Positions 2,120-59,254 of a stretch of 64,000 nt of DNA are shown piece by piece. The notes below the pieces were generated by a model. It saw only the letters and a list, made by a program, of their open reading frames with translations. It searched no databases and had not been told where the DNA came from. The translations under genes were made by a program, and so were the position numbers. This stretch comes from Glycera tridactyla (Eukaryota). Location of the stretch: the NCBI GenBank assembly GCA_965644265.1, contig OZ286463.1, forward strand, positions 27,404,001 to 27,468,000, written 5' to 3'. The number at the start of each line of letters is the position of its first letter. Positions within the stretch are counted from its first letter, which is position 1.

Positions 2120-2775
2120 GAATCACAATAGGTAGGAAAATTAGAGGATTTGACTTTCATGTTACCTGAACTTTGAGTATGTGTGATTGGCAGTGAATGG
2201 CTTCTGCACCCACTAGCCTACATTTACAGTGAAAAGAGCGATCTGATCATCTGAAAAAAGAGAACCGATATTCCAGTTGAGGCCAACATTCTTCACCTTG
2301 ATGCAATTAATCAAACTACACCATGTTTGTCATGAGGAACAAAATCAAATGTCAATTTGCAGTTATGTTAATACCCATGGTATTCATTCACCCTGGCTAG
2401 CTCTCTAAGCATATCTGTCATGAGTTTTGAATGATACTTCTGTAGTATTTGAATATATTGCAATAATTGTATGAGGTGTGATATGGTAATCAGCCTTGGT
2501 TTTTGGATGAAATTACACAAACTATTTCACTGATAGATATTTTTTTATTCGCATGTCATGTATCCATGTCTTGAATATGTTAGAGTATGAAAGAAAGCTT
2601 TTGAACTGAATCAGACCACATGGTAATTCAGTTCAGAAGCCCAAATCATCATCTTTTGTTATTGAAGTAGATATTTTGGTAGCTTACTTTGTCTCTACTT
2701 GCAGGCTTCCAGTCGCTGTGTGGCAGGCCATCAAGAAAACAGTCTTACTCAGTGTTTGCTTTCTTGTGGGTTACC

Positions 2776-5700
2776 ATGATGGGTCCTCCTCAAAGCAACG
2801 ACAATAGAATCCAGGTGAGCTGAATGACAATGTTCTCCCTTTTATCCACTCACTGCTCATTCTTTGTGAAATAATATTAATCATGTCCATTACAACATTC
2901 TCAGCAGGCACAATCCAACAGTGTCTGGGCTTTGCGATATGGGTGACAAAATTTGTTTCTACTCAAACCATTGGACACAACTATCAGCTTCAATGGGCAG
3001 AGAGTAATACTCAGATATGCATGAATGATGGTCTAAACGTTCATACAGCTATTTCATAATATATGTAAAAGAAAGAAGGTGGGAGTGTTCATCGACAATT
3101 TTGACATGCACACACTGGCAAGTAAATTCATATGAAATTGGAGACGCAGTGAATTTTCCAGTACAAGATGTCTATATGATCCCCGGTATGAATATATTTT
3201 CACAGGAGGCAGCTGATGTTAATTTCTTGACTCTCAATTTTCAGCTATTCAGATTTTATCATATTGAAATGAAGAGCAGAACGTTTAAATCACTGGCATT
3301 ACCTTTATAAATCAGAAAGGTGTCCATGGGACACAGATGCCTCTGCTGAGACCCTAACCTGAGTGAGCAACAAAGTTTTTGCACATAACATGTCGACTTC
3401 ATATGGTGATCACTTGTACCAATTTGTTTGAAAAGTTATGGGCTAGACAATAATTGACCAATCAAAGGCCACCATTTGGTGGGAACTGACCGAAACATGG
3501 TGAATTGTGCACACAAAATATCATCCTCATAAGATGATCATTTGCACCAATTTATTTGAAAATCCAGTCATGCATGGCAAACTTATGGGCCGGACATGAA
3601 TCGACCATTTGGCGTGAAATCACTCAAGCATGATGGTTCTTGCTCTGGACACATCAACCTTATGTGATGATCTTGTGTCCCAAGTCATAAGAGAATCCAG
3701 GCATGGATGGCGAAGTTATGGCCGGACATGAATTGACAAATTAGAGGCCACCATTTGGTGGAAAACCACTCAAACATGACAGTTCTTACCCATGACACAT
3801 TGCCTCCATATGACGATTATGTGCACCAAGTTTCATGAAAATCCAGTCATGGATGGCAAAGCTATGGGCGGGACAGGAATCAGCAAATCAGAGGCCAGCA
3901 TTTGGCAGGGAATCACTTAAGCATGAGGGTTTTTGCTCATGACACATCCTTTTCAAATGATGATCATGTGTACCAAGTTTTATGAAAATCTAGGCATGGA
4001 TGATGAAGGTATGGGCCAGACACAAAAATGATCTGACACACATACACACACAGACACACACAGACACACACACACACACACACACATGGACAGGGTAAAC
4101 ACTATATGCCATCCGCCACGATATGGCGGAGGCATAAAAATTCTTGCACAATTGATGGGACACTGATGGTGATTCTAGAAACCCACTAACTGGGTGGAGA
4201 TGATATAACAAGGAAAGCAGTGAATGAAATGTTTGTGACAGCTGATGACGATATTCTGTTCATGATCAGCTTTCAAAGAGCTGCTCATGACATTCTCAGT
4301 ATTCAGTAAATGTGTACTATTGTCAAATTTAGGTCAATGTGCACTCTAGTTGAATTCAGCTGGAGTTGAACTCCTGAGTTTTCATAGATTTGATCATTTT
4401 ATTTGGTAGCATGAACAGTAGGTGTCTTTCAATGACTGTGTCTGAGCAAGATGGAATGTCAAGGGCTTTTTCACTAAGTGGTTGAATTGAATGAGATTGC
4501 TATTTTGTTACTGAATAAAATGCGATCAGACAATTTGATTTGACAAGAAGAGAATTTTAGTTATCATAGTTTCTGGATCATTATTTTTCAAATTACATTC
4601 CGGGTCACACATTAGTGTGAAATTGGATTGAAATGAAATACACACTGTTCTTATCAGAACATAATATCACCTCAAAGCTGTTCTGAAAAGTGATCTGGTG
4701 AAGTCGGCTCGATGCCAATGGACCAAAGATGATGTCATGTTTCAAACAGCTGAACTTAAGATTCTAAGGAAACCACACAGGGGATGAGAAATGGAGCACA
4801 GCTCCAAGTGCACATGGTCAATTGAAGCTATTATCCAACTTGACACCTAACCAGGCATTCCATCATTTCTGATTCACTTGGACGGTGTCCAAGATGTCAA
4901 CAATCTGTCACATGATGTAAACGACCCTTTGCTTGATAAACATGTCCATAAGTGACAAGACAAATATATTAAAATACATTACAGTGAATCTCATGACACT
5001 GCAGCATTTTTCATTACCCTTCAACAGGTCCACCTTATCTCTGACAGCATTCTCAAATACATGCCAGCATTTGTGGAAGGATGTGAATTCACAGTGGATG
5101 CATATCCGGGTGCCAAGATTGATACAATCAAGCAAGGTAAGTGTCCTATCATCTTGCCTTGAACACCATTAGTACTGATTTCCAGAAACCAGGAGTTGCC
5201 TGTATATCATACTGGGAACTTACCCCCCCCCCCCCTCCCCGCACACAGACACAAACACATTGAGAAATCAATAGGCCTATGACACCTGAGCTTATTGGAA
5301 AAGCAGTTCATCCATGATCTGCCAATTTTTGTTTGCTGAGTCTGGATATCGATTTCAATTAACAAGTTCACAACTGCTCATAATCATCCTCTTCAAACAA
5401 TTACTGTGTGATGATGACAAACAATTTGTCAGTCGAAAAACAATGCATGAGAAAGATGATATGTGTCAAACTTCAAACTTGTGTCGTTAGGCAGTACTTT
5501 TGACAAGGACATCAAATATTGTCTCAGGGAGCTCATGAAGCATATACTCTGACCATAATATACTGACCCCTAGAGTTTGAATATCTACTTTTATTTAGGA
5601 TCTATCAATAGGAAAGAAAGTATGAACACAAAATTATAATATGTTGTGAATGGTGATTTCCAATACCACCTATATTTCACGATACAGCTTAAGTAACATT

Positions 5701-8700
5701 GGAGGGTTTAATTCAGGGAATTCAGGGCTCCACGTTGTGAGCCACAGGTAACCAATCACAAGTGCATATTAAGGATGCTAGTGAAGAAATATTTCGGTTG
5801 CAAGCTCGTGAATACCAATCAAATTACAGACAATTGCGATTGCTTTCACAATAAACAAATGAATACCATGATGTGAACATATATTTTTCCTGGTGACCAC
5901 CATCTTGTCTCCTCGGAAAATGAACCATGTGTCCTTAGAAATTGCAGCGCATGAGCATGATATAGTTGTAGTGAATATGGAGCATGAGAAACCAGGATGC
6001 CTTAATGGCATGATCTAAAGATAGCTGTTCTCTGCATGGATTATGCAAATGAGGGTGTTTCCGTCTGAATCCATGCATAATTGTGCCTTGCATCTCTTTA
6101 AGGTGTTTATTAGGCAAACTGTAATGATCTACCATCGCTTTGATGCGAGATCACATTGTATTATGAAACTAGGAATGTATGCCAAAAAGAAGGATGCCTG
6201 GTAGCTCACATCTCCTCTGCTAGTGAGTGTGAGAGAAATCAATTTGAATTTCCACATTCATTCAGTCCACCAGCTGCTCACTTTGTCGAAATGGGGATAT
6301 CTTACCCTCAAAACCCAATCATCGAAAATGTGATTTCACTCATAAATCCCCGAATCATACAATCATTTATGCCTCCCATGATTGAAATGCTTCCATGTAT
6401 ATCTAATGAACCATAAGTTTAAAATGAACAGAAAAAGGTAGAGACTATTCATATCATTAGCGATGTCAACCTGATGGCAAGCCAAAATCAATCATGAGCT
6501 GGCAAGAAATTTCTATAGGAAGAAATCATTTTCAAGTAAGATAGACTCATAGAGAGCTATCCAAGTAATCTATGCAAAGCAGACAGGCTTTCACAACAAC
6601 CATACACGATTTCATGGAAATCCGAGCAGTTCATCCCCTTCAATCGGCAATCCCAAAAAAGTTTTAGAATTTGTTCCATTTTTTGTCATCTAAACTGCAG
6701 TCCCAAACATGAGTGATAAGAGGAAGGATGCCTGCCTGAAAACACAACTGAGTTATGGTGGAGATTCCATGGAAATCCGAGCAGTTCATCCCTTTCAATT
6801 GAATATCCCAAAAAAGTTTTAGAATTTGTTCCATTTTTTGTCATCTAAACTGCAGTTCCAAACATGAGTGATAAGAGGAAGGATGCCTGCCTGAAAACAC
6901 AACTAAGTTATAGTGGAGAGCTTGAATGAAGGCATTTTGACAAATTTTAAACAGATATGTTAGTATTCAATATAGTAGGCCATAATGCAGTGACACAGAG
7001 GTCTATTTGTGGCTCACAGCAAGGACCGCACCCTGAGATTCCTAAAGGGAGGATAGTCACTAGCCATCTGATCTATGGTGTATTTACATTGACAGCAGCC
7101 GAGGTGGGGACAATGTGTTGGTGGTGGTGGTGATGGTTGAATCATATGGACCAGGCCTGTGGGGCTGAAATGGTCAGCAGCAAGAGTGTTAACATTTGAG
7201 TGTGTAAGTGAGTGGCTGTCGGTGTGGGAAGTTGAGGGGAGGGGGGGGGGTTAGGTGGGGGGGGGGGTATGCTGGTTGGTAAGTAGTTGGCTAGGTTTGT
7301 AGATGGATAGGTAGGTAGGTCGTTGGGTAGGAAAGCTGTTTGTTGGGACTCCTAAAATCCGGGAAGGGACTCCTAAGTTGGAGACTCTTCGAGTCCATGG
7401 GGCTCTGAAATATTTGGCTAAAACATCTTAGCAGAACACAAACCAGGCTATATTCCGATACAATTTAAGATGTGATGAATGCAATTTGGCCAAAACTGAC
7501 ATGGCTACGAAATCATGAAAATTATCACCTCCAAGCTACCAAAGAAAAAAGAACTGGCTAACGAAAAAGTAGCTTCCGATTTTTTTCTAACTTAGAGCCC
7601 CGGGAATGGATGAAAATCGCTCAGATCATCTACATTCGAGGACTAATGGTCAAAATGAGAAAATAAATCATGAATGATACAGTTCGAGCAAACACAGCAA
7701 ATCCTAAGAACCAGAGCTGCTGTCTCGAATTTCAGTCAAAAACTTCAGAGAATGTCAATTTGATACATGACAGGATGCTTGTATCATCATTTGCTGCCAG
7801 CCTGTCGAGAATGCTATTAGAAATTGATGGAGCATGGAAACAACTTTGCGCTCATGTGCAGTATCATATTCCAGTCAAAAAACAACTCCTATTAACAAAT
7901 TATCAGACTTAGATTCGAATTGGTAGCAGCAGTGATATCTCACCTCCAATCCATGCCCCATGGTGCAAACAATGTCGTAACACACAGATACAACTTGCAG
8001 TGCCACACTGACATGAGACTTATGGTAGAATGCATCCAGGAGCTAGCCATTGTCCAGTGTGCCATGGTTACCATCTTGGCTCTATTGAGATGGTCATGCA
8101 ATGGTCATGAATGAGGTCATTCAAGACTACCCTTTCTTGGTTGCCAACATAATGTGTACATATATAAAACTGACGGATGGTTGCTACATCTTGTTGGCAG
8201 CATGTTGTGTATTGAGAGGCCCATCTAATGAGGATGGGTAAAATTATTCATGACTACTACTTGCAGGGTCCACACTGAAGTTGAACTTTCATGAAATTCA
8301 CACTCTCAAACTATCATTTGTGACTGGACTCATTGCTGTATTGCTACTGAGTCATTCGACTTTGGGAAGAGTACGAGGTAGTTAGTTGGTTGCTTGGTTC
8401 TGGTTTAACGTCACGTCAGCACCATCTGGGCATTATTGTGATACCCATGCAATGGGCATGGGTGGGACCTTCCAAGACTCCTTCTGGGTCCCCAATGGAA
8501 GATGAAATGATATGAAAATCAAAGACACACAAGGTGCCATCTGAGAGTATGACGTAAAGATATCCATCGGCTCATGTGTGTAAGACATGTATCATAGTCA
8601 TATGGAAGGGATGATGGATGATAGGAAGTTGGGGCCATCCTGCTCAGTCATATACTTCACTGGCTATGGTGCATCACCACAAGTTGATCAACATGGATGA

Positions 8701-10725
8701 TATCTTACTTTGTGATATGCTCATTTAATATTCCAGCTGTATGTTCCTCAGCATATCACATCGACAATGGAGCTGATGTTATTTGGATACATGTTGGAAC
8801 CAACAACCTACCGGCTCTTCTTCCCAATAAATTCGAGGATACTGCATGGGAACACATCCAGCTGGCGCAAGCACTTCACCAGAAGTACAATAGAATGGTC
8901 ATCATCGGCGAGGTACTTGGAAGAAGGTAAATTAGGATCTGTCTGCACTTTATGTTTTTTAAATGTACATAGTTGTTCCTATTCAATGTAAGTTTATATA
9001 TGTAGAAGATGAACATGGTAGGTAATGGTGCATTGGATAAATGCACCATTACCAGCTATATCAGATATAGTGAGAACATATTAGCCCATGCATCGGATGA
9101 ATCCTATGATTTATACAGCAGCAAATAGGATTAATCACTAATATGCAGGCCTTGTCCAGCAATCATAGGGCTCCCAATATTGTCAAGCTGGTTTGCAGTT
9201 GACATTCCACAAATGAAGACGTCATTGAGGTATCTCTATAGTGTGTTGCATTTCCTCCCCAGCTTTGTTCAAGAGCATCACAATTAGCTACGAGTGTCAG
9301 CTTCGAGCTAGTATTATAACTTCATATGCCATCATTGGATTTACAGGTCAATGATGAGTGTGTACTGATAGCTTGTTTCACAACATTTCAAGTTTCTCAT
9401 CATATAATGTTTGTAGTTTATGAGAGTGATGCCATCAAAGGGCAGATCACACATCTTGCAAAGACCAGGAACACAACAGTGCTTTGTCACATGATCTGAT
9501 CATGCTGTTCAACCTCCATCAATTATTCTGACTTCAGAGACTGTTATGAGGTGTCGGCCAAGTTGTATAACTCACACCTACGGAAACTACACAAGATGGT
9601 TGCAGATCCAGAACAGATTCGCTTGGTCAGTTATGTTGCATTTGAACAGCCATGGTCAGACAGACTGCTTTCGTGAGTATTTCTCTCTCTACATATGAGG
9701 AATTTGATTGTTTGCTTTTTAAGGGCTCTAGTAAGAAAGCTTGCCCTACTGGCATATGCTCAGGCAAGTGATTTCGCCCATACTCGATGGTCAAATCTTC
9801 AGTCCTCACCCACCAGGAAATCCACCTCACCTGGTTCAAACACAAAGTACCACCTGCTCTCTTAGATTGGCTCTACTAATGAGTGATAAGTATAAAAATG
9901 GGAATTTAATATTGCTGTTTGCCTGATGCTCTATTGGTGCTTTGACCAGAATACAACTTTCATGGGTTACTCAAGCAGTGAAAAGGTTTGGCACAAAACA
10001 CAATGGTATTTCACATTTTATGTAGGACAAACATGATTGTAAAAATTGTCTCAAGTTGGCAGGATGTGGATGAATGGATGTCTTTCCTGAACCCTTTCAA
10101 AAAGCATCCATATTGGGCCCATCTGTCAGCTTACAAGTGATATGGATATACCTGTATAGATTGATTGATTCATTGCTATTTCTTCATCTGTGTTTGTCTA
10201 TGAACATACATACAATATATTTAGTACATGGTAGAGTCTCTAGGTAGATAAACCAATGTCATTACTGCTTTGTTTTCAATATAAAATTGATTTTCAACTA
10301 AAATAAATGGTAGTTCAAACAAATGAATGAGTGAGAATGTGAATTTGATGATATGTCAGCAAAAGAGTAATGGGTGATCATATAATATTGAAAAAATAAA
10401 GACACATGATGTACAAAATGGGTAAGTGATTGTTTGAGAAAATGAAATGAGAACAATGAAGTATAACCACATTTTTTGGACTTGGTCTTTGCTAAATATT
10501 CATATATATGTCCCTTGTTGATTAGAAGGGTTTAAGCACCATCATGAGAGCCATGGAAAGAGTGATTGTTAAAGCATAAATACATGCATTTCTGTTGACA
10601 GCAAGGCCGATCAGTTGCATCCTTCTAGGAACGGCAATGAAGTTCTCCATTCATTCATCGCCAAAGTCATAGAACATGAGATGGAGAGAAATTTCGAACT
10701 TGAACAAGCTGCATGGCATCAGTAA
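2776..10725 (+). CDS. Spliced SGNH (GDSL-like) hydrolase gene. Exons 2776-2814, 5028-5136, 8737-8926, 9538-9672, 10602-10725; 198 aa if it ends at TAA 10723-10725
   Basis: All four introns are GT-AG with compatible phases (0,1,2,2): cag|gtgagc, tcaacag|, aag|gtaagt, ttccag|, aag|gtaaat, cttcag|, tc|gtgagt, ttgacag|. The joined product is MMGPPQSNDNRIQVHLISDSILKY...YPGAKID...DVIWIHVGTNNL...VIIGEVLGRR...KADQLHPSRNGNEVL, giving SGNH blocks I, II, III and V in order. The first exon (acceptor before 2705) is open upstream of the ATG, so the N-terminus could be longer. Confidence 0.85.
3309..4140 (+). mobile_element. HINE-like (Helentron-associated, pearl/DTC84-type) non-autonomous element
   Basis: 5' short hairpin tgtccatgggaca with sub-terminal atgcctctgc. 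About 5 tandem core repeats of ~130-147 bp (tgcaccaagtttcatgaaaatccag...). (CA)n/(CAGA) microsatellite at 4040-4086. 3' hairpin atgccatccgcca-cgata-tggcggaggcat at 4106-4135, whose right arm is inverted to the 5' motif, followed by aaaaa-tt. Confidence 0.8.
6608..6917. repeat. Two-copy tandem duplication, ~155-bp unit
   Basis: gatttcatggaaatccgagcagttcatccc...gagttatggtgga starts at 6608 and again at 6763 with few mismatches. Confidence 0.9.
7399..7601. mobile_element. Small MITE-like element with terminal inverted repeats
   Basis: ggggctctgaa at 7399-7409 and ttagagcccc at 7592-7601 are inverted. No clear TSD. Confidence 0.45.
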
Positions 10726-12282: not shown

Positions 12283-12745
12283 TAGATACTGAAGGTGCAA
12301 TCTTCTGTACCACATACAGGTTCTTAATTGGTGAATGTTCGAGCCTTGAGAAGTCTCGACAACGCTTCGCACGTTATCTTCAACAGAAAAAAAGGTGAGA
12401 AATTTCTTGACTTGTCATTGTGTTTTGATTGTGAGATCGATCCAAAGAGACCAACATGGGTGATATCAGGTGAAATCACCAATGAAATGGTCACATCTTA
12501 CCCATGTTTTGGTCATGAATCAAAGAAAAGGAATCTCAGAAAGAAGAATGGTCGTCGACTTATAGTGGAGAGGTGGTAATTTCAAAGGGAAAGAGAGAGA
12601 GAACTAATGCCTGAATATTTCAACTTTTGTCGGGGTCGTGAAGAGTGGTCTCATCATGTTTTGTCTGCAACCCGGCGAGGTACCTGCTCGACGATCCAGA
12701 GTTTGTGGGGAGGCCAATTGTCACTTTACAGTCTGATTCTCATAC

Positions 12746-13290: not shown

Positions 13291-14599
13291 AGTTCCCCAG
13301 TAAAGGCACTGTCTCAGACCACCATGTGTCGCTTCTCATAAGATATTTTTCCCCTCTCAATGTCCTCATGCAGTGTGTGAGTTGAATGTAGTCAAATTGC
13401 TCTGCAAAATAGCCACTCATCTGGCACATAATAGTTTTTCATGGGCAGAATAAAATCACAGGGTATGATGATTCAACCGGGGATCGAACATGTCTCACAT
13501 TGATCATTTCAAATCATTTCCAATTTTTGTCTCAACCCAAAACCAATCAGGCAGAAAAGTAGAATTCTGCTTTGAAGAATAGTGGTTACATAAGTGAATG
13601 TGATGATGTATCTATAAATATCCGTAAATAGATTCCAAAGTCGAAATCGAAGTCAAAGCCAGGGCAACTGCAATACCTACCTCAATTTTGTTGAGTATAG
13701 GTTGAAAGCTGTTTTCCGACTAGTAGATGAAACTCAAAAGATATCATGGTCATCTTGACATTTTCATGAATAGAGAGAAAATGAGGATATAGCTGATTCA
13801 GTGCATGGTAAAACATATATTGTCTCCACTATTGTGCATTGCCCACGATTGGATGCTCCAAATATATGATTCGTCACATTTGACACAAATCACAAACTCA
13901 TTTCACTCTGAGAACTCAGCCATGGCTAATGTCACACATGACAAGCAAAATACTGATTGATTTCTCATAGCACTTTCAGATCCCAGCGTTTTGTAAAATC
14001 TTTGACATGTCATTAAGGTGACAATTCCTGCCATGAGAAATATTTCACTTTTTGTCACCACTATGTTTTAATGATATCTATATGAATAAACGTAATCGAT
14101 TAAGTGCATTGATTGGAACGCGGATGTCAAGAATGTGCTCAATGTCATGAATTCATTTCAGAAGACGGTTTGAAAGAAACTTCTTCACAAAGAAATACAA
14201 AGATCAGAATCGTTACAAGTCCAAAACAGTCAAGGTGAGCGATACTTCATCATTTTCCACTCAGCAGTTCCATCAAATTCTTGGGGTTTCATCCATCTCT
14301 CCTATCTCCCATCCCCATAAACACTATCCATGTATGTACTGAATGGTGTCAAGCCTAAATTCTTGATAGATAGTCTGTTGCTTAATTAATTATTTCAGTT
14401 TTGCCTCATTTCTGGATGCATTGATATGTGGTTGAATAGCTCAGAATATGGATACCCAAAAACAAATGAAGAAAAAAGAGCCATATATTAATATGAAAGG
14501 CATCGAAATGTCTGAATTATTGAACTGAGATGATGTTGTTACTTCAGACCCTCTGTCATGGCAAACAAATGTGGGATGCAATTGATTCTTCATACTCAG

Positions 14600-15636: not shown

Positions 15637-15820
15637 ACATGCTCGTGATACATGTCATGCAGCATATCTATCAGCATCGTCATCCAGTTCAATATCAACG
15701 TCTGATTCTATCCAGGCTAAATCAGCGAAACCTGTCAATCTACATAGCAGAAAGCCATCCCATAATGGGACCCAAGCAAAATCCAAAGTACCAACAAAGC
15801 TGGATGAGTGGAAGATGCGG
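15637..15820 (+). CDS. Probable downstream exon of the SGNH gene (Ser-rich HARDTCHAAYLSASSSSSIS...KVPTKLDEWKMR)
   Basis: Acceptor catcttttggaatag| and strong donor cgg|gtgagt. Open for 184 bp in the phase-2 frame required by the upstream exons. Confidence 0.55.
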
Positions 15821-20712: not shown

Positions 20713-22246
20713 ATTCCCAAACATTTGTCATTCATTGTTTTGTACATCAAGATATGATTCCAACATTGGATGAGAATTAGATTATTGTTATAATACATAC
20801 TCAAACTGAGGCAGTGAAAAAATACTCTCTATTGTTCCAGATTCAGTGATGTAAGCACAGCATTTCCATATGAGGTCATTGACAGCAGTGAGAAGAAGGT
20901 ACATTTGTTTTTCTACATTGGATGGATGTTTATGCATGATGATGGTTGGGGTCATGTTATTCTCAAATGAATTAGGCTTGACATGCCATCATTTGGTGTT
21001 CTCACATGATTGATATGAAAGTGGAAAATTCCGTGATGGGTGGTTGGTTCTTCTGGTTCAACATCAGCTCCATTTGTGCCTTATTGTCATGCTCATAGGA
21101 GTATAGAGCATGAGAAAAGATACGATTATCCCAGCCAAAAATGGCAAAGACAATCTGGTATGGCTATACATGTCATCATATATGTAATGTTAATGTCATC
21201 CAAACAGTCAGCTCATTCAGACAAAAGTCCATACGTTTAAGACCACAATGATATTTTCTTGAACACTGACAATCTTGCTCGACATCATTAATGAATAGGT
21301 CGAGTATGGGGAATAAGTGAATGAAGAAGATAAATACGAAAGCAAGGAGCAAGTCTCTGAATTGATGAGTGATCAAATTTTGGGAATTGAGTCGAAAAAG
21401 TCATCTGAATGATGTGAAAGTGTCAAGAGCAAGTTGAATTCCCTCTTGAAAGTCTTGAAATTGGCCGAGAAATATCAATAAGGCATGAGTCAAATCTGAA
21501 GACACCCTCTGTGAATAATTTTGTTGTTGTTTTTTTCGAATTCGTCCTGGATATATGATCATGACCATGGTTACTATTTCTGCAATTCACCCTCCATTTT
21601 GTGACATGGATTTATTGGAGGCATGGCTGGTATTTTACTTCTTTGCCAGTGTTCAACGAATGCCATGGCCAATCATAGCTGACGGGTGTATGTAGGCTGC
21701 CAGGCAAATTCCTATCTTCACAGCTTGACCTATAGACAAGCATGTGATCAAGGTGTATTTAGGGTAAGCTGGCAGCTGGGGCCCATTTCATGACTCCAAC
21801 CAACCTATCATAATAATGCACTCTGCAAGAAATCATGAAAGAAGTGAGGGGATGGAGCACTAAGAGTCTCAGGTGAGATGATACTAGAAGATATTGTAAT
21901 TGATACCTCACCAAGAAGTCATCACTGAGATGCCTGTCTCAGTGGCCAGTTAAAACTCTTCACTTTTGATTTTACCCTTTTCCTAGTTCTACTATAGCAT
22001 TAAGTGTTGTTTGGCTACTTGCAAAGCTAATAGTTATTCATGAAACCCATGGATTTTGATGAGGATATAGTGAAAATGGCGAGACTTTACCCTACAATCA
22101 GATAACTACCATGAGAGGTAATTTTCTACAAGAAAAAAACCCACTTAATATTGATAATTTTGTAATTTATGTATATCCCTTCATGAAAATTCTTGGTTCG
22201 ATTGAGTATTGTTGACACAGTTCAATGTGTTCATCACATACTGGTA

Positions 22247-22360: not shown

Positions 22361-23143
22361 TTGTAGGAATAGTGCTGTGTTGAGCTTGAATACTTGTTAC
22401 CTGTGGTCTCTTTTCTTCTGTTGGGTTATAACTTATTAATATATATATATATATATAATGGATATGATAGTTCCATGGACACATGGAAAGGCATGATTTG
22501 GTGAATATATTCATTCTCAGATCATTGGAATATAATGTGGTGGAGAGAACACAATATTTGCTGATTTGAAATGTTAGCATGATACATTGTGGTATTCGAG
22601 GGCTCAATGTTCACTTCGAGCAAGTACCCATTCTCAATTTTGTTGACCACTGCTTGCTCCCTTCCATGCGTGATGTATGTATGTTTCTTAACAACTATGC
22701 AAGACAAAGGCATGTCCTATCGGTATGGTCCTACACAGCATACCCCATGTGGATTAGTTCATGACCTATTCAAACATGATCAGCAAGTAAGATAATCTTG
22801 GTATCAAGGACAATACTGCAATGTGTGGTGAACAGTCCTAACTGGGTCATCTGACGAATCAACAATATACTGATTAATTGATTCATCAGGGCTCAACCTT
22901 CCTTCAACCAGGGCAGAAATCTTTGAGACTGAACTACATACTAATATTTCCATATCAATTACAGGTACTTCCAAGCAATGATCATCGTAAATTGACGAAA
23001 AAGAAAATCAATCACAGTGCAAGACAGGAAAGTACTCCCAAGGTAAGTTTATCTGGTTGACATTTGAGCCTTTTCATTACTATTTCTCCAGAAGAGATAC
23101 AATACTTTATGGAACAATTCATGTAGCAGGCTGGTGGGTTTTT

Positions 23144-27450: not shown

Positions 27451-27999
27451 TGTATCTTTGACTTTTCACAGACCATGCTCAATGGAAATTGAAAATTTAC
27501 AAAGAGGATATAGTAACTGTTTCCCAAGGAATACTGTTGACTTTGTCTTCAGAGTGTATGCGAAAACAAAATTTACTTGAGATTGTTCATGATTTTATAG
27601 GTGGCTTGAGTATTGAGATGATATAATGTTGGCTGAATGTAGATGTGAATGTGAATAACTCTATTTTATAATAACAAGTAGAGTTAGCTACTAAACTATT
27701 CAGTATCAATTAACTTGATTATTCGTAACAGCACATTAATGGTTAGTGACAATACAATCGGCTTCAAACGATGATAATGCAAGGAATGCAAAGAAACACC
27801 TCAAACAATGATGTGTACTAACTTACTTGGGGAACAGCTTGTGGTCTGAATATTCGTTTTAAAGATCTTTGGAAAGGATAAAAGTAAAGGTAGTTTGCGA
27901 AGAAGCTCACAAAAAACAAAATATTTATGAGTTTGATAATTATGCTATTGAACAAGTAAGAATAATTTCAATTTTTTTTAGCTATTAGCTGGTGAGAAG

Positions 28000-44915: not shown

Positions 44916-45428
44916 CTATATAGAACTCTTATTTAACAATCTTAGGGTACATAATCATTTTTTACATCTAGAAGAGACGATATTTATTAATATATAAACA
45001 AATTTAAATTATACTAATACATGTCTACGTTATAGTGTATTCCATGTATTACATCAATTTTCCATTCTAGATATTAATCCAGTAGCAATTGGTCTAGATA
45101 TGACTTTAAGTGTTATATGATATGGTTAAAGGTTCATTGTTACTCTCGCTCTTTCAGCATGTGTAGCTGTATTTACAAGAGAAATATAAGGTGACACGCG
45201 CACGTGTGCGCGCCACGTGCTTAACCGTGATAAATTTCTCTCATACGAGCAATAGTCGCACTATACATACTGCCGCAATGACTTACTACATTGACGAAGC
45301 CCTGAAGACGATCTATATGTCTACGTTCGGTGATATAACGTGTCGTGGATGCCATAATGTAGAGAAAACAACGAAGAATTAATCTAATAGTCTGTCCGCT
45401 TTCATTTCCGGTGATGGTCTGTTCGAAG

Positions 45429-50809: not shown

Positions 50810-53329
50810 GTCAAATTGCTTGGCGGAGGTAGAAGAGGGAGAGAAAGAAGAGTTCATTTGGAAGAGCTGGCAATGATCATCATTGCAACTTGCGAGGAAA
50901 ATAACATCGTACACTTGAACAGCGACATGCTTATGGCTGATGTAGTATCAGAATATAATTGCTTGAGTAGGGAGATGTATGCATTCAGGAAGCCGCTCAC
51001 ATTCAAGTATTTGAAGTTGATGTATAGTGATAAATCTCATCCACTGCATGGTATTGTCAGAGATAAATGGCCCACAATCACGGATGATGTTGAACCTCTG
51101 CATCATTCACAAGATGATGTTGAAGGTTCAATCCATGGCATCAGCGTCAGTGAGGTGCCTGGTCATATACTGTGTGAAGCTGAACCTCACAAAGATAGGG
51201 CCTCTGACCCAAGTGATGCTGAGCATATTGAAAATCCTTGTGGAGATGCAGTTGCTCCAGCTGAGTACAACCAGCCACTGTTGCAATTAAATGAAAGCAT
51301 TATGACCACTGGTTTTGATGGGGGGCAAGGTCATATGAATTTGAGGAGATCAAGTGTGACTGAGGGACAACAAGATCGTCAAACTGTGCATCATCGCTCA
51401 CAGTATTGTGTTGATGCTGACAATACCAATCAAAGGGAATTCTCTAGCAAAGTTGAGCAGTCATTTGGGGATATATTTTCATCGACACAGACCCTTCCCA
51501 TTTCACCCATACCAGAAGGTATACCTGGCCACATTAGTCACCCAAGTAACTCTAATTTTGGTAATTATGTTTCCTCGAAAACTGATCACTTGAAATTGCA
51601 GGTACATAAACTAAGAATATGCACTGGTTTCGATAGTGGCCATGGCCATTCATGCGAGTTTACTAGCAGTAACAATTTGAATCAAGTACACCAGATTGGA
51701 TCTATGCATGGATCATTCTCATTGACTGATAATCGCAATTGCCAAGGTGGTGATATTCATGCTTTGCGTAATCACATAGTATTATCCAAAGTATGTGCTC
51801 CGACCAATAGGCAGAGAGGGACTCATTCAGATGAGGTCTGTTATACTGCTCAAACTGATATACAATGTAATACCATGGCAACCACTTCAGATTTGAATGT
51901 TCAGGCCCTGCATGATATCATCTCTGACCGTAATGAGACAAATTTATCCTCCGAGTTTGCTGAACAAGATACTGCCCACACTGACATTGTTTGCAGCATC
52001 ACTTCGAAACCTATTGTGATTTCTAATCTTGGGCAGTCTCACACACATTCAGCTACATCATCAGAATCTTTGTCAATCAGTGGAAGTTGTACTGCCGATA
52101 CACACTGTGCAAATCTGGATATAGATAACTTATCCAATGATATTCCTGCCACAAGTAGTCTTGATAATATAGAGTTTAAGTCACATATAGATCAGAAAGA
52201 ATTCGTGACTGCTTCTATCCCACATGGCATCAATTGTGTCATGAAGGAGAAAGCAGGTTTTCATGAGTACAGCCTTCAGGTGGATTCACAAAGCAGTGAC
52301 AATGTTGGTAAATCCATGGACACCCATGTGGATGACATCAGGTCAGTGCTATCAGGTGAATGTGATCGCCCAAATGAGTTACAGGTTGATCAAAAGGAAG
52401 ATGATACTGCCAACACTGACATTGTTTGCAGCATCACCTTAAAACCTATTGTGATTTCATATCTTGGGCAGTCTCGCACACATTCAGCTACATCATCAGA
52501 ATCTTTGTCTATCAGTGGAAGTTGTACTGCCGATACACACGGTGTCAATCTGGATATAGATAACTTATCCAATGATATTCCTGCCACAAGTAGTCTTGAT
52601 AATATGGAGTTTAAGTCACATATAGATCAGAAAGAATTGGTGGCTGCTTCTATCCCACATGGCATCAATTGTGTCATGAAGGAGAAAGCAGGTTTTCATG
52701 AGTGCAGCCTTCAGGTGGATTCACAAAGCAGTGACAATGTTGGTAAATCCATGGACACCCATGTGGATGATATCAGGTCAATGCTATCAGGTGAATGTGA
52801 TCGCCCAAACGAGTTACAGGTTGATCAAAAGGAAGATGATATCAAAAGGTCCGAAGGCTTTATTGTAGGTAACACAATAACTCATCAGTCTGTTGGCTGT
52901 GTACAGGTATTTAGCCAAACAAGGGAAAATATGATCGCTTTTTTATCAACTGGTTCCCTCAATACAGTCTTCGATATTGATGAGAGTTGTCGAATGATAG
53001 AAAATATCATAAGCCCTATCAAAACAAAGATGAGTGACAAACACTTTTCATTATTTACCCAACTTCGCAAAGTAGGTAGCAGATACTTGCCTCGAGGGAA
53101 ATGGGAATTTATGTTCAGTGAGTTATTAGAGCAAAGTAATAAGCTCTGTACATTTTCATTCTGCAATCATTATGTTTCTGTTGCCAAAACAAATCAATCT
53201 CATCTTTTCACATGTCGTGCAAGATGTTCATATAGAGGGTGTGATGTTAATGCTAGTATGGCATTGAAAAATAATGGAGTTATTGACATTGCATTCAAAG
53301 GTAGGCTTGGACATATTGACAAAAACTAA
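50810..53329 (+). CDS. N-terminal part of the giant MULE-type transposase reading frame (disordered region, 145-aa duplication, first zinc-ribbon module), ending at an in-frame TAA
   Basis: Preceded by the acceptor ttattttttctgttatatag| at 50809. Same frame as 53396-59254. It contains YLPRGKWEFMFSELLEQSNKLCTFSF...CRARCSYRGC...GRLGH, homologous to two modules in the next ORF. Confidence 0.8.
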   Translation, partial: VKLLGGGRRGRERRVHLEELAMIIIATCEENNIVHLNSDMLMADVVSEYNCLSREMYAFRKPLTFKYLKLMYSDKSHPLHGIVRDKWPTITDDVEPLHHSQDDVEGSIHGISVSEVPGHILCEAEPHKDRASDPSDAEHIENPCGDAVAPAEYNQPLLQLNESIMTTGFDGGQGHMNLRRSSVTEGQQDRQTVHHRSQYCVDADNTNQREFSSKVEQSFGDIFSSTQTLPISPIPEGIPGHISHPSNSNFGNYVSSKTDHLKLQVHKLRICTGFDSGHGHSCEFTSSNNLNQVHQIGSMHGSFSLTDNRNCQGGDIHALRNHIVLSKVCAPTNRQRGTHSDEVCYTAQTDIQCNTMATTSDLNVQALHDIISDRNETNLSSEFAEQDTAHTDIVCSITSKPIVISNLGQSHTHSATSSESLSISGSCTADTHCANLDIDNLSNDIPATSSLDNIEFKSHIDQKEFVTASIPHGINCVMKEKAGFHEYSLQVDSQSSDNVGKSMDTHVDDIRSVLSGECDRPNELQVDQKEDDTANTDIVCSITLKPIVISYLGQSRTHSATSSESLSISGSCTADTHGVNLDIDNLSNDIPATSSLDNMEFKSHIDQKELVAASIPHGINCVMKEKAGFHECSLQVDSQSSDNVGKSMDTHVDDIRSMLSGECDRPNELQVDQKEDDIKRSEGFIVGNTITHQSVGCVQVFSQTRENMIAFLSTGSLNTVFDIDESCRMIENIISPIKTKMSDKHFSLFTQLRKVGSRYLPRGKWEFMFSELLEQSNKLCTFSFCNHYVSVAKTNQSHLFTCRARCSYRGCDVNASMALKNNGVIDIAFKGRLGHIDKN
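51968..52837 (+). repeat. In-frame 435-bp (145-codon) tandem duplication inside the transposase N-terminus
   Basis: gatactgcc(c/a)acactgacattgtttgcagcatcac...gatcaaaaggaagat at 51968 and 52403, with few differences. Confidence 0.95.
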
Positions 53330-56300
53330 AGCATTACAGAAGCTGAATCAGTCACTCAATTTCAAGCATATTCCAACCATCCTGCGAGCAAGCATGTGGC
53401 CAAAGTTTCTCAGGGAACAACTGGTGAATCACCTGTTGGAACTGATCATAATGCAATACCCAAGAATAAAAAAGATGCTCATGGTGATGAATTTCAATGT
53501 TCATCAGGGACACAGCCTTTGTGTTGTCCTGACCGAAATGTATTTGAAATGAAGCAGGTCGTAATTGAATTTCTTTCTACAGGCTGTTTCGACTATGGTA
53601 TCATTATTGATGATGTTTTCTCGATGATAGAAAATGTTCTCCCTCTTGTTGTGACCCAGATGAGAAGAAAAGATCATGACTATCTCATGAGATCATTCAA
53701 AGGTCTCGGTTCATTTCACATTCCAAAGGCGAAATGGCAATCAATAATTCACAGTCTTGTATTTGAAAGTAATACAGTATGTGATTTCTCTTTCAGCAGT
53801 TATCGAATGCCTACAGCACAAAGGGCTCATGACAATTTTATTTTAGAGAGTAGAGGAAAGTGTTCCATGAGGACATGTGGGGTTTCTGTATTGGTCAGAG
53901 TGAGAAAAGGAGGCCAGGCTGAGATCAGTTATGAAGGCAGAATTGGCCATGGGATTCCAAAACAAAGTGCCAGCTCAATTTTGCAGAGTCTTAGCTCCAC
54001 AACAGAGAGATATTCCAATGATAATGAAAGAAAATCACAGAGTGATCACATATCTAGTGAACTGTCCATCACTCATCAGAGTTGTGATGAGGTGGAAGCT
54101 GATAGTCTACCAACATCAAAAAATAAACTCGGCAGTATGAGAAGGATTCCTGCAGATAATTCTGATATGGAAGTCTTGTCTCCACCTGAAGAAACAAATC
54201 AAACAACTTGTAAAGATATAGATTCTAAAATGAAACAGGCTATGCTTGACTATTTGGCAACTGGACATATTGATGATAGCATTGATATCAATAACACTTT
54301 CTTGATGATAGAGAATCTAGTGCCAACCATGAAGACTCAAGTTTCAGACATTGATCTAACAATTCTTTTGTCTTTGAGAAAACCAGGGAGCAGATATCTT
54401 CCTAGAGGGAAATGGGAGTATATGTTTGTTGAGCAGCTGAAAAAAAGTAATAAGTTGTGTTCCTTCGTTTTCAAGGAAAATTATATATCAGTAGCAGTGA
54501 AGCAGAAAAAAAAGGTTATTTTCACATGTAAAGCTTTTTGCAAGCATGGAAATTGCTCGGTGAGTGCTCTCATTCGTCTTGAAATGGATGGCACTGTGGA
54601 TATATCTTACAAAGGCAGAATTAAGCATGATAGTAAAGCTATCCATGCAAGACCCATTCGTTCTCCAGAGCGATTGAAACTATATTCAGAGTTCAAGTCA
54701 GGTATATCCCCAAGTAAAATGTATCATGATAAATTATCAAGAAAAGATGATGATGAATTGCTCCATGGTAATTTGGATGGAATAGGTATCACCCAATCGG
54801 TTATGCAGAAAATCTCATCAGAGTCAAAGGTCGATGGTCAAATAGATCAGAGCATCTTTTCCAGGCTATGTATGATGAAACAGCAGTCAGAAACACTGTC
54901 GAAAGGGAGGAAGGTAATTGGAGATATCCAATATGTTTCTATGGACCCAACTATTGTGATAATTCTTAGTGAATCAGGTCTCAATATCTGGCATAATAAT
55001 GTTAAAAATGATTATGTATTCCTTGATTCTACCGGAAGTGTTGCAAAGGCATTACCAAACAAGAGCAGTTTTCTTTATTATGAAATTTGTGTTCGCAATA
55101 GAGATATTAAACAACCCAACATACCTATTGCGGGGATGGTTACAAATGACCAGTCAGAGTTTGCTATGACTCAGTTTCTGAATAAGCTTATTCATTGTCA
55201 GAAGAAGATGTTTGGATTTTTGGCAGTTAGGCTCCCATTACAAATCAGAATCGACAGATCATATGTCCTTCTAGCCTCTATTCTCAAAGCTTTCAATAAT
55301 GAAACTATAACAGATTTTGCACTGCGAAGTTACAGGATAATAACAGGATGTGCAGAAGGAGATGACCTCAAGAAAGTTAATCCTTCTGCATGCATTGCTC
55401 ATACCATGAATTCTTGGAAACATCATTCCAAAACTCGTTACACTGGTGATATATCATTCATTATGTTTGCATTCAGTATATTGGCATCATCTACCTCCTT
55501 AATGGAATATAACACAAATTTGTACAATTTCTTTTATGTATTGCTCTCCGAATATAACACTCATTCAACAGCAATGTATAGCCAAAAACTCTTATCATCA
55601 GGCAATGACAAAACACATCAAATTTCGGAAATCATTGATAGCCATCAAGATGCTGAAGGAGTAAAAGAAGAAAACTCAGAAGAATCCTATATGAAACAGG
55701 ATCTCAAGTCTCCATTCAGAGAGTTGGCACAGAGATCGAAATATCAAGTATGTGCAGCAATTGAATCAGATAAAAGTGATGAGTTTCCAAAAAATGCGAG
55801 ACACTGCCCAGACATGATTGACTTTTTCATAAAAAACTGGTCAGCTTCGGCCCACTTTTGGTCAAATCTTGTCTGTGGGGATCTAGGCCGACATGGGAGT
55901 AGTGAAATATACAAACAGTTCACTTTTCCAATGAATGTTGGCGTACACTCATATAATGCTCATTGTGGCACCAACACTGCTGCTGAGCAGCGTTTCAATA
56001 TAATCAAAAACATCCATGCACTTGGAAGCAAAATTATGAGATTGGACGTCTTTATTCAAAATATGGTCAAACATTTCAGTGATGTCCACAAAAAGTATTT
56101 TTTCGATGATTTCAAACGAAGTAATACAAAATTATTAGAAGAGAAATGGGGTAAAAAGAAGACAAAAACAAAGCGTAAAATTGGATTTTATCAGGGCACT
56201 CCAAAGAATGTGAGCATTTTGAAACAAACAAAAAAGATGCGAATAGACTCAGATTCAATCAACTCAGAAGTGACTTGCATGCAGGGGTCAGATGTCAAGA

Positions 56301-59254
56301 GAGTTGCAGAAGATGTTCCTCTCAGTACCAAAAAGCAACGAGTAACTCCCTCTGTGACTCAATATTTGGCACAGAAAAATATTACCACAGTTGGCAGCTC
56401 ATTGCAACAGTGTTCAGAGCCGAAGTTCATACAGTTATGCAATATAGCACAAAATTGCTGGTTTAATGCCATATCCCAGGCATTCATTGGTACCACTTTG
56501 ATAAAGACTTTTCTTGAGAGAATCTCATATATAGTTGATTTAACTAGTCTGTTTCATATGAAATACAAAAAAGTATTCTGGCTCTGGAGCAATATGTTGA
56601 AGGGAAAACATATACCTGCTAGTGAGATGGAGAGCGTATTAGCAAGCCTTGCTGATAGAGGAATCATGGGTAACAATTATTTCAAATTTGGCCATCAACA
56701 TGACGCACATGAAGTTGTAACCACATTGATAGATCGCTGCATTGAAGAATGTGGTGAGCATTTTTCTCTTGACATTTTACACCAGTCACAATGTAGCACG
56801 TGTGAAACTCAATCAATACTTGATGTTCAGACTGTCAGTAATCTATCACTGACTATCCCTGTTCCAAGAAAAAATTTAAGAAAAATCTCAGTATCATCTC
56901 TTCTTGATGAGTATCTTTTGGAGAAAACACCTATGCAAACAAAGTGTAACATCTGCAATACACATTTGAAGAAAAAAATGAGTTTTTTGAATGCCCCGGA
57001 AATATTAATCTTCCATATTAAAAGGCATGATTTGGGTCCAACTGGGATACAGAAAAATCGGACAAGTGTGTATTTCGAAGAAATTCTGCATATACAGGAT
57101 TTTGAATACCGGATACATAGTGTTGTAAGACATAAAGGGACAGACCTACATAGTGGACATTATGTTTGTTATGTCCACCAAAATGATAATTTTTATAGAT
57201 TAGATGATGACAGGCGACCTGAAATTGTGTCAGCATTAGATTCCATTTATGAGGAGGCATACATCTTGGTCTACACTAGATTCGATCCTGATCGCAATCT
57301 GTCATCTTTGCCTAGCTGTGTTTCTTCTTTTCTATCGCTGGCATCATACAATAAACTAATCATTGAAGAAGTAGAATCTCAGTTGAAACATGGATGCCTG
57401 TCTCCAAATGTCACTGTCTTCTTACAGTCTCTCTTTCATGGCAAGATTGAGATTGGACATTTACAATTTCTGTTAGGATATCATGGCATCCGTGACATCA
57501 GAAATCTGAACTTATGGACATTTGTTGACTTCTTATTTACAAAGTTGCTACACAGTAGTAAGATTTTCACCTTTAAGATCCATCACAAAATATCTTGTCT
57601 GATTTGCGAATGCAAGCATGATTTGATAGCAGCAATTTCTATGATATCATGCACAAACCTAGCTACACCACCCAGGGACTTTTTTGAGCAGCAAATCCGT
57701 ACATCATCTAAACCCAATTGTCATGATAATTTCAGGATAACGGATTCATATTGCATAAGCCCATCAAAAATGATCATGATCTATTATGAGACGATGGATA
57801 AGTTTGATATCTCAAATTTGAAGCAGCTGAATTTTAGTAATTTGTCACAAAATATGTATGAGGTATGTTATACACTTACAATGTGTCTCCTGTGTGAAAT
57901 GGAATGTGTCAAGTGCTTAGTTGAAGAAAATGGTGAATACAAGGAATATGTCAATGGAAAGCTCAGCGATATTGAGATGTCATCTTTTGGTTCCAACAGT
58001 AGTGCCCTTCTATTCTACGAGTTGAATGAGACCAGTTGTTGCCATGACATTAAGGTAGAAATACCTATTGACATGAATGAGTATATTCGTGTATCAGAGG
58101 AGAATGTAGACCTTTTTACAATCGATGAAAAGCTGTCAGCATTAACTGATGACTATGTTGATGAAATATGTGCATTTAATCAAACCATGTATTTCCATGA
58201 TATGAAGATTCTGCTGTATGGGGGAGATCTCACAAGTAGCATCATCAACATGTTCATCACTTTTATTGCTTCGATTGCCAAACTAGACAGAATCATAGTA
58301 TGTACATCTCTGGACTTTTCCCGAATCCAACAACAAGAGTCTCCAAAGTATGAACAGGGAGATTTTTGGATGAAAAGTGATTTTGTTTGCATCCCGGTTA
58401 ATATATCACAAGGACAATTCAGGCATTGGGTCCTACTTTTTGTATGTCTGTCTGAGAGATATGTGATGTACTTCGATTCGTTGTCTGGTTATGATGCTAG
58501 TATTTCTGAGGCCTTGTTCAAGCAATTGTCTTATGAAAAGTTTCTTATGAATGAGCAGTTTGACAGGAATATGTGGAAAGTAATCAACATGTCAAAACAT
58601 CCGACCTTCCCATTACAGAGAGATTCACACAGCTGTGGTGTTTATGTCTGCATGATTGCTGAATGTCTGTTGACATTTAAGGATTTCCCTTTGACCATCA
58701 GACAACAAGACTTGGATTCCTATAGGATTAAAATACTATCCCTCTTAGTGAATCAGAGTAATTTACAAACGACTAAGCTAGTCAGGAATATCAAGGATAT
58801 TTTCATGGTTGCAGAGTTTGTCGAATATCATTCGCACAAGATAGCAACACTATTCATTCCAAGCATTGCTGATAAGTATATTTCAAAGATAAAGCCATGG
58901 CATCAACGGCACAATATTATGATGTCCAATCCTGTCCACTTCAGAAAAGCTAAACTGGAAGGCTTTGCCAAGTATTACATTGCCGATGATGTCATTGATA
59001 CAATTGCTGACATCATAGAGAGATGTGTGACTCACAAATTTTCCCAGGGTATATTTTCATTAGCAACATCCCATCTCAATATCGATGGGTGTGATCTGGT
59101 TAATAACAGATTCACAAATGCGGAGTTTGCTTCCTACTTGACGGATGTCCTGACAAAGGAAATTTTGATCCTGATGTTTCGGGTGCAATGTGGCATACAG
59201 TATGTCAGGATAAACAATTTATTTTGTGCATCTGAAATATCGCTAGCACAATAG
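53330..59254 (+). CDS. Mutator/MULE (NOF-like) DDE transposase fused to a USP (peptidase C19) domain and a Ulp1 (peptidase C48) domain
   Basis: Transposase: FLDSTG (D at 55025), IRIDRS (D at 55253), ACIAH (CxxH at 55391-55402), TNTAAEQRFNIIK (E at 55985). USP: CNIAQNCWFNAISQ (C at 56456), QHDAHE, CSTC/CNIC fingers, HKGTDLHSGHYVCY (H at 57158), LDDD. Ulp1: HWVLL (H at 58424), YFDSL (D at 58475), QRDSHSCGVY (C at 58634). The frame is open from 53330. Confidence 0.88.
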   Translation, partial: SITEAESVTQFQAYSNHPASKHVAKVSQGTTGESPVGTDHNAIPKNKKDAHGDEFQCSSGTQPLCCPDRNVFEMKQVVIEFLSTGCFDYGIIIDDVFSMIENVLPLVVTQMRRKDHDYLMRSFKGLGSFHIPKAKWQSIIHSLVFESNTVCDFSFSSYRMPTAQRAHDNFILESRGKCSMRTCGVSVLVRVRKGGQAEISYEGRIGHGIPKQSASSILQSLSSTTERYSNDNERKSQSDHISSELSITHQSCDEVEADSLPTSKNKLGSMRRIPADNSDMEVLSPPEETNQTTCKDIDSKMKQAMLDYLATGHIDDSIDINNTFLMIENLVPTMKTQVSDIDLTILLSLRKPGSRYLPRGKWEYMFVEQLKKSNKLCSFVFKENYISVAVKQKKKVIFTCKAFCKHGNCSVSALIRLEMDGTVDISYKGRIKHDSKAIHARPIRSPERLKLYSEFKSGISPSKMYHDKLSRKDDDELLHGNLDGIGITQSVMQKISSESKVDGQIDQSIFSRLCMMKQQSETLSKGRKVIGDIQYVSMDPTIVIILSESGLNIWHNNVKNDYVFLDSTGSVAKALPNKSSFLYYEICVRNRDIKQPNIPIAGMVTNDQSEFAMTQFLNKLIHCQKKMFGFLAVRLPLQIRIDRSYVLLASILKAFNNETITDFALRSYRIITGCAEGDDLKKVNPSACIAHTMNSWKHHSKTRYTGDISFIMFAFSILASSTSLMEYNTNLYNFFYVLLSEYNTHSTAMYSQKLLSSGNDKTHQISEIIDSHQDAEGVKEENSEESYMKQDLKSPFRELAQRSKYQVCAAIESDKSDEFPKNARHCPDMIDFFIKNWSASAHFWSNLVCGDLGRHGSSEIYKQFTFPMNVGVHSYNAHCGTNTAAEQRFNIIKNIHALGSKIMRLDVFIQNMVKHFSDVHKKYFFDDFKRSNTKLLEEKWGKKKTKTKRKIGFYQGTPKNVSILKQTKKMRIDSDSINSEVTCMQGSDVKRVAEDVPLSTKKQRVTPSVTQYLAQKNITTVGSSLQQCSEPKFIQLCNIAQNCWFNAISQAFIGTTLIKTFLERISYIVDLTSLFHMKYKKVFWLWSNMLKGKHIPASEMESVLASLADRGIMGNNYFKFGHQHDAHEVVTTLIDRCIEECGEHFSLDILHQSQCSTCETQSILDVQTVSNLSLTIPVPRKNLRKISVSSLLDEYLLEKTPMQTKCNICNTHLKKKMSFLNAPEILIFHIKRHDLGPTGIQKNRTSVYFEEILHIQDFEYRIHSVVRHKGTDLHSGHYVCYVHQNDNFYRLDDDRRPEIVSALDSIYEEAYILVYTRFDPDRNLSSLPSCVSSFLSLASYNKLIIEEVESQLKHGCLSPNVTVFLQSLFHGKIEIGHLQFLLGYHGIRDIRNLNLWTFVDFLFTKLLHSSKIFTFKIHHKISCLICECKHDLIAAISMISCTNLATPPRDFFEQQIRTSSKPNCHDNFRITDSYCISPSKMIMIYYETMDKFDISNLKQLNFSNLSQNMYEVCYTLTMCLLCEMECVKCLVEENGEYKEYVNGKLSDIEMSSFGSNSSALLFYELNETSCCHDIKVEIPIDMNEYIRVSEENVDLFTIDEKLSALTDDYVDEICAFNQTMYFHDMKILLYGGDLTSSIINMFITFIASIAKLDRIIVCTSLDFSRIQQQESPKYEQGDFWMKSDFVCIPVNISQGQFRHWVLLFVCLSERYVMYFDSLSGYDASISEALFKQLSYEKFLMNEQFDRNMWKVINMSKHPTFPLQRDSHSCGVYVCMIAECLLTFKDFPLTIRQQDLDSYRIKILSLLVNQSNLQTTKLVRNIKDIFMVAEFVEYHSHKIATLFIPSIADKYISKIKPWHQRHNIMMSNPVHFRKAKLEGFAKYYIADDVIDTIADIIERCVTHKFSQGIFSLATSHLNIDGCDLVNNRFTNAEFASYLTDVLTKEILILMFRVQCGIQYVRINNLFCASEISLAQ

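Follow-up and report, generated by a model that had tools for sequence, protein, structure and literature searches.

An intron-split SGNH esterase family that may form the 5' part of a giant USP-Ulp1 gene in Glycera tridactyla

Introduction

Three described systems come closest to the locus reported in this work, in which a chain of small exons for an SGNH esterase domain lies upstream of a giant gene with USP and Ulp1 protease domains in Glycera tridactyla. The first is the group of esterase domains in the ORF1 (first open reading frame) proteins of non-LTR (non-long terminal repeat) retroelements, including ZfL2-1 (PDB 4c1b) and CR1, RTE-X and Penelope elements, for which two residues specific to transposons, H191 and S228 in ZfL2-1, have been described (Schneider et al. 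2013, PMC3905857). The second are the Texim SGNH genes of fish, lancelet, sea urchin and Oikopleura (Tomaszkiewicz et al. 2014, PMC4021074). The third are DNA-transposon proteins with Ulp1, OTU or ubiquitin-hydrolase domains, such as the Ulp1 Mutators of hydra, lancelet and plants and Ginger1 (Bao et al. 2010, PMC2836005). The locus lies in a stretch of 64,000 nt (assembly GCA_965644265.1, contig OZ286463.1, positions 27,404,001-27,468,000 of the forward strand), in the following called the window, which was compared with its own genome of 2.04 Gb.

As judged from exon phases, conservation and linkage, the SGNH exons are probably the 5' part, encoding the N-terminal domain, of a giant USP-Ulp1 gene of about 56 kb which would run from 2776 to 59254. 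More tentatively, we propose that four old lineages of this gene encode one protein of about 3,100 residues composed of an intact SGNH esterase, a candidate transposase-like core, USP and Ulp1, which could be a domesticated "triple eraser" acting on protein or chromatin marks, or else be encoded by a giant DNA transposon with introns.

A seven-locus SGNH family under purifying selection

What is observed in the window is a chain of exons with matching phases, conserved under purifying selection and linked to a giant gene with USP and Ulp1 domains (Table 1). The sequence-only reading of the window had described the upstream part of this chain as five small spliced exons, and these were found as proposed, with all introns GT-AG. 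Exons were joined by script, solely for the counting of stops and phases. With exon 5 counted to 10725, the five exons sum to 597 nt, that is 198 codons plus a TAA which is the single, terminal stop, with exon-end phases 0/1/2/2. All four SGNH residues are present in the five-exon product, within ISDSI, PGA, HVGTNN and DQLHP. The predicted catalytic set consists of the Ser in xDSI, the Gly in PGA, the Asn in GTNN and the Asp and His in DQLHP, and the domain looks catalytically competent. Pfam gave no SGNH match on the single exons, which are too short. Nothing backs the gene start that had been placed at 2705, the ATG being at 2776.

Exons 2, 3, 4 and 5 each match exactly seven places in the genome, which form seven collinear same-strand loci with identical intron positions, phases and GT-AG sites; copy number and intron conservation had both been named as checks in the sequence-only reading. 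The loci fall into three young pairs and one single copy, that is four lineages: C11 (the window) with C31; C10a (C10:37.76 Mb) with C17:56.13 Mb; C10b (C10:66.63 Mb) with C4:132.03 Mb; and C28:44.39 Mb alone. Since exons 2-5 recur with identical order, boundaries and phases at exactly these seven loci, chance is excluded, and by this comparison the five exons are selected coding sequence for a complete SGNH domain. Exon 1 is putative, as it recurs only in the 95%-identical C31 duplicate, which gives it no independent support; the search signal for it in the other lineages was too noisy for any call.

Block I reads xDSI in 7/7 loci, SDSI in five and TDSI in C10b and C4, the Gly being replaced by Ser or Thr. 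Block II is PGA in six loci and RGG in C28, the GTNN of block III is invariant in all seven, and block V is DQLHP or DGLHP throughout. Amino acid identity among the four lineages is 46-70%, and outside the exons no nucleotide similarity was found among them. The ratio of non-synonymous to synonymous substitution rates (dN/dS), likewise a check that had been asked for, is about 0.1 among lineages, with proportions of synonymous differences (pS) of 0.64-0.87, which are saturated, and of non-synonymous differences (pN) of 0.17-0.36; in C10a/C17, the older of the young pairs, it is 0.12.

The family consists of four old lineages at seven loci, copied as DNA with their introns retained. The C11 and C31 copies lie inside a collinear duplication of at least 64 kb with 94-97% identity. 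The whole window (1-64000) has a collinear twin at C31:9915979-9978399, which bears an extra piece of about 9 kb (C31:9945750-9954726). The other two pairs are 90-93% and 97% alike, indicating large duplications of differing age. The C4 copy (C4:132030000-132039500, near 6976) lacks 11 nt right after the exon 4 acceptor when compared with its 97%-identical C10 twin, and is probably a pseudogene because this loss breaks the frame.

The giant gene downstream

The giant exon of the window has no start codon. The other three lineages match it from residue 1 (V-K/R-L-L-G-G), each right after a tag acceptor and none with an ATG. With no ATG, an exact start at an acceptor and homology from the first residue, it is judged to be an internal exon with phase 0 at its entry, the phase in which exon 8 ends. 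On 53396-59251 of the window Pfam detects UCH (5.8e-26) and Peptidase_C48 (2.1e-16).

A genome search with the part 54800-57499 of the giant ORF found a paralogue 22-44 kb downstream of all seven esterase loci, always on the same strand. Identities of these paralogues to the window copy are 98%, 55% and 42-31%, a divergence in step with that of the esterase exons. Where copies of the giant gene have no esterase exons, the first approximately 120 residues of the giant exon are missing as well. Three such esterase-less copies, 85% identical to the window copy and with differing 5' sequence, are located at C4:35585642-35591918, C11:53325946-53332265 and C28:23528995-23540608. The giant frames of C10a, C17 and C10b are open over 3,000-3,436 amino acids. 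C11 and C31 are free of indels relative to each other along the 8,445 nt of the giant exon; within its first 1,250 codons they differ by 28 synonymous and 51 non-synonymous codon changes. Two adjacent stretches of about 445 nt at 51962-52841, 96% identical to each other's C31 counterpart, indicate an internal tandem duplication.

The transposase-like core stays a candidate: no DDE or MULE-type transposase match was obtained in Pfam, PDB or PHROG for 53396-56434, and a single-sequence AlphaFold model of this region had a mean pLDDT (predicted local distance difference test) of 33 and was unusable. This bears on the possibility that the whole unit of more than 50 kb, esterase exons and giant gene together, is a giant intron-bearing DNA transposon, still or recently mobile, with the esterase as an accessory. 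Such an element would fit the multi-copy state of the giant gene, which has 56 matching pieces in the genome, many with stops, the presence of the unit on at least six chromosome-scale contigs, and the fact that Mutator and other DNA transposons are known to carry Ulp1 and ubiquitin hydrolase domains (PMC2836005). There are, however, only four lineages, with saturated dS, the three young pairs are part of extensive collinear duplications (64 kb or more in the case of C11/C31) and not of element-sized insertions, and no transposase domain was detected over the region searched; we consider a mobile unit of this kind distinctly improbable. The sequence-only reading had listed cargo of a large DNA transposon among three origins of the esterase. 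This is the closest of the three in that the exons are constantly linked, and apparently spliced, to a giant multi-copy USP-Ulp1 gene.

Linker exons and the stop after exon 5

Directly after exon 5, each of the four lineages has a GT in phase 2, its position being the same throughout: CA/GTAAGT in C11, CA/GTGAGT in C31, CA/GTAAGG in C28, AG/GTAATA in C10b and C4, and AG/GTATCA in C10a and C17 (the slash marks the exon boundary). The TAA or TGA that follows exon 5 belongs to this donor-like site, and C10a and C17 have no stop there. The TAA at 10723-10725 therefore probably lies in intron 5 and is not the end of the protein.

Downstream, three further exons would carry the frame to the giant exon. 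Exon 6 is 75 nt long in six loci (three lineages), and its profile has no other match in the genome than these six, which in each case lie shortly downstream of exon 5. The counterparts of exon 7 are 67 nt long in C10b and C4 and 70 nt in C10a and C17, with cag acceptor and gtgagt donor sites, all lengths being 3n+1. Exon 8 measures 123 nt in C10b and C4 (ending PTKLEKWKMQ) and in C10a and C17 (PLTKMEKWKMK), shows synonymous changes in that frame, and in the genome its profile matches family loci only. The lengths of exon 7 (73/67/70 nt) and exon 8 (105/123/123 nt) thus vary by lineage and the frame is always kept. Joined to the first 300 nt of the giant exon, exons 2-8 give an open frame with all sites GT-AG in C11, C10b, C10a and C17 (three lineages), the exons 2-8 totalling 807, 819, 822 and 822 nt, respectively.

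In the predicted gene, exons 1-5 would encode the complete SGNH esterase domain and exons 6-8 a strongly basic linker of 83 residues, with 25 Lys or Arg and 6 Asp or Glu. The long intron 8, 14-35 kb depending on the lineage, would lead to the giant exon with a USP deubiquitinase and an Ulp1 SUMO-type protease. The product would be a multi-enzyme protein, with a predicted short-acyl esterase beside two proteases for ubiquitin-like tags, and might strip modifications at chromatin or at the protein targets of a transposase-derived protein.

Other connections were considered and discarded. A direct splice from exon 5 or exon 6 to the giant exon fails on phase (2 versus 0), and candidate exons at 27865-27955, 20841-20898 and 22976-23042, picked by codon score, have no backing from the other lineages. 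A zinc-finger-like "CFQC" match at 50270-50356, upstream of the giant exon, is not conserved in the other lineages, and a segment common to C10a and C10b, likewise upstream of the giant exon, is interrupted by stops in every frame and resembles a repeat.

A number of observations weigh against a single long gene. The splicing of the chain is a prediction from genomic sequence. Peptide similarity of exon 7 among lineages is weak and of low complexity, being matched by 15 of 2000 shuffles, and no counterparts of exons 6-8 turned up in C28, the linker region of C28 itself not having been read. The TAA right after exon 5 in three of the four lineages would allow an unspliced, esterase-only product of 198 residues, and a separate giant-gene product could start at a conserved ATG that precedes the exon 8 donor by two codons. 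The giant exon of the window has an in-frame TAA at 53327-53329 (codon 840) where C31 has GAA, and C31 has its own stop at codon 1258; dN/dS of the SGNH exons in this pair is 0.54. Finally, none of the three proteins matched by exon 3 (see below) bears this esterase on a giant protein, the longest having 367 amino acids. Because of the premature stop in its giant exon the window copy may be decaying, and the same may hold for the C11/C31 lineage as a whole.

Both the closing of the frame by a TAA in three of four lineages and the ATG near the end of exon 8 are what would be expected from neighbouring genes, that is a stand-alone five-exon gene for a 198-residue esterase ending at 10723-10725, as the sequence-only reading had it, with exons 6-8 at the 5' end of a second, giant gene and both genes merely side by side in one duplicated or mobile unit. 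Such an esterase would in C10a and C17, which are without the stop, run into a junk tail of 36 residues. Exon 6 is entered in exactly the phase of the exon 5 donor, and exons 6-8 keep the frame in their lengths although an in-frame ATG is lacking from exon 6 of every lineage and from the window's exon 7. In C10b the spacing is only 191 nt from exon 6 to exon 7 and 510 nt from exon 7 to exon 8, so that a gene end and a new promoter would have little space there. We therefore regard two neighbouring genes as quite unlikely and prefer one long gene. The proposal of an SGNH gene in the window stands in so far as the domain is real, complete, under selection and distinct from the esterase of the neighbouring LINE (long interspersed nuclear element); it is probably not a 198-residue gene of its own, since the stop is unconserved and inside a donor-like GT of all four lineages, and exons 6-8 prolong the frame.

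Table 1. Exons of the predicted SGNH-USP-Ulp1 gene in the window (a slash marks the exon boundary)
Feature	Position	Strand	Length and phase	Content and splice sites	Occurrence
Putative exon 1	2776..2814	+	13 codons; donor phase 0	ATG; donor CAG/GTGAGC	
Exon 2	5028..5136	+		block I ISDSI (Ser nucleophile), block II PGA (oxyanion Gly); acceptor aacag/, donor G/GTAAGT	
Exon 3	8737..8926	+		block III HVGTNN (oxyanion Asn)	seven loci, 48-95% amino acid identity
Exon 4	9538..9672	+		between blocks III and V	seven loci, phases alike
Exon 5	10602..10721 (10602-10725 if counted to the TAA)	+		block V DQLHP (Asp/His); most likely ends at donor CA/GTAAGT	seven loci
Exon 6	12320..12394	+	75 nt; phase 2 in and out	basic linker FLIGECSSLEKSRQRFARYLQQKK; acceptor cag/, donor AG/gtgaga	
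Exon 7	14162..14234	+	73 nt; phase 2 in, 0 out	K/R-rich; acceptor tttcag/, donor AAG/gtgagc	
Exon 8	15716..15820	+	105 nt; phase 0 in and out	ends PTKLDEWKMR	
Giant exon	50810..59254	+		no start codon; begins V-K-L-L-G-G at conserved acceptor tatag/GTCAAATTGCTTGG; USP (UCH) and Ulp1 (C48)	

Relation to other esterases

Within the genome the family stands apart. With the exon 3 profile the seven loci reach 115-134 bits, and no other place exceeds 21.5 bits, a gap of about 95 bits. The genome holds at least 2,387 candidate Lipase_GDSL_2 (PF13472) ORFs, which are mostly intronless among the 150 scored. The nearest intronless relatives, very weak at about 15 bits per exon, are the esterase ORFs of a LINE with three ORFs, matched at 139 or more places; the copy at C28:86029500-86039400 (3735-9294) has a 368-aa ORF, a separate GDSL_2 esterase of 271 aa and a reverse transcriptase (RT). 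Weak exon 3 matches L008-L010 proved to be unrelated repeats. A word search with exon 3 gave no candidates, and its profile gave chance matches only against PDB.

Against 1.84 billion proteins the exon 3 profile found three weak matches only; as this collection is without this genome's own exon, the distribution of the family cannot be judged from it. The best match, P0001, is an intronless ORF of 367 aa on a 1,660-base ENA contig, with a PF13472 score of 6.4e-13 and 50 bits against a cut-off of 32.9. Exons 2, 3 and 5 map onto it in order (exon 2 on residues 4-29, exon 3 on residues 45-103). P0001 is laid out as an SGNH domain, a Lys/Arg-rich stretch and a C2H2-like CFQC...HYHRKH motif; similarity of exon 6 to its tail was discarded, being reached by 68 of 500 shuffles. 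P0003, P0004 and P0005 are multi-copy, partly broken relatives on large eukaryotic contigs, and word searches started from P0003 and P0001 yielded nothing beyond these proteins and two close copies. In ESM-Atlas, the clusters nearest to P0001 are stand-alone GDSL_2 proteins of about 160-206 aa from molluscs and annelids, which is a point in favour of a separate esterase gene in the window as well.

P0001 also aligns over its full length, though weakly (E 0.15), with the ZfL2-1 esterase 4c1b, and by this alignment the two transposon-specific residues could be placed on the family. The H191 equivalent, four residues before the oxyanion Asn (HxGTN), is His in six of the seven loci and Asn in C28. 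At the S228 equivalent (IIVSGPLP), positioned through weak alignments, all seven loci have Gly (..IGE(V/I)L..) and P0001-P0004 have Ser. The gate residues Ile, Thr and Leu match those of the published ZfL2-1 esterase, and a short-acyl substrate is predicted on this basis.

These data bear on a descent of the domain from a LINE ORF1 esterase of the CR1/L2/RTE-X type, which concerns its origin only and is compatible with one long gene. The compact motif style is the same, the H191-type His is kept in 6/7 copies and the gate residues are present; the weak alignment of P0001 with 4c1b and the LINE esterases as nearest, if very distant, intronless relatives in the genome point in the same direction. 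On the other hand, the S228 equivalent is Gly in 7/7 copies, the unit contains neither an RT nor a coiled coil, and the gap of about 95 bits is found in a genome full of LINE esterases. We hold such an origin to be unlikely. The domain resembles retroelement esterases in its predicted working residues, but the proposal of a domesticated or intron-gained retroelement esterase is not supported, with no RT in the unit, Gly at the S228 equivalent in every copy and no close LINE esterase in the genome.

A LINE with a clearly different esterase ORF (43998-44909, minus strand) is indeed present 33 kb from the esterase exons, as had been reported. This three-ORF LINE (39064-47688) is the only intact LINE nearby and lies inside intron 8. 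It is absent from the collinear C31 duplicate, and was therefore inserted after the C11/C31 duplication.

Significance of the predicted fusion

To our knowledge, the esterase domains of CR1, L2, RTE-X and Penelope elements are a long-standing puzzle, their substrate and role being unsettled. Here the same compact kind of esterase is apparently spliced to an unrelated multi-copy giant gene with two enzymes that remove ubiquitin-like tags. Should the fusion be real, the esterase may be part of a broader modification-stripping toolkit of mobile or mobile-derived genes, and the search for its substrate would become tractable, with one protein, defined partner domains and intact paralogues. The tentative one-protein reading would, if true, give the first esterase on a protein of the DNA-transposon type rather than on a retroelement protein; no description of an SGNH domain on an Ulp1 or ubiquitin-hydrolase DNA-transposon protein was found in the searched literature. 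For annotation, the esterase exons and the giant gene form one locus and should be treated jointly.

Comparison with known systems

The window domain shares with the ZfL2-1-type esterases a compact SGNH domain with the full S/G/N/D-H set, the His of HVGTN equivalent to H191, the gate residues (Ile after Ser, Thr before Asn, Leu before His) and the tie to a multi-copy, possibly mobile-element-derived gene. It differs from them in the Gly at the S228 equivalent, in having no coiled coil and no RT, and in being split by four introns, or five including the one after exon 5. It is also apparently fused to USP and Ulp1 and not part of an ORF1 protein, and the similarity is at motif level only.

Texim, compared by description only, likewise consists of multi-intron SGNH hydrolase genes without RT link; these are related to CR1 esterases, patchily distributed, and in fish linked to a DNA transposon (Helitron). 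Texim is, however, described as a gene of its own next to or around Helitron, and not the N-terminal domain of a giant protease-bearing protein.

Like the Ulp1-bearing DNA-transposon proteins, the window gene combines Ulp1 (C48) and a ubiquitin hydrolase on a multi-copy protein; its transposase core is a candidate. In distinction to them it would add an SGNH domain, absent from their searched descriptions, and is predicted to be composed of nine or more exons distributed along about 56 kb.

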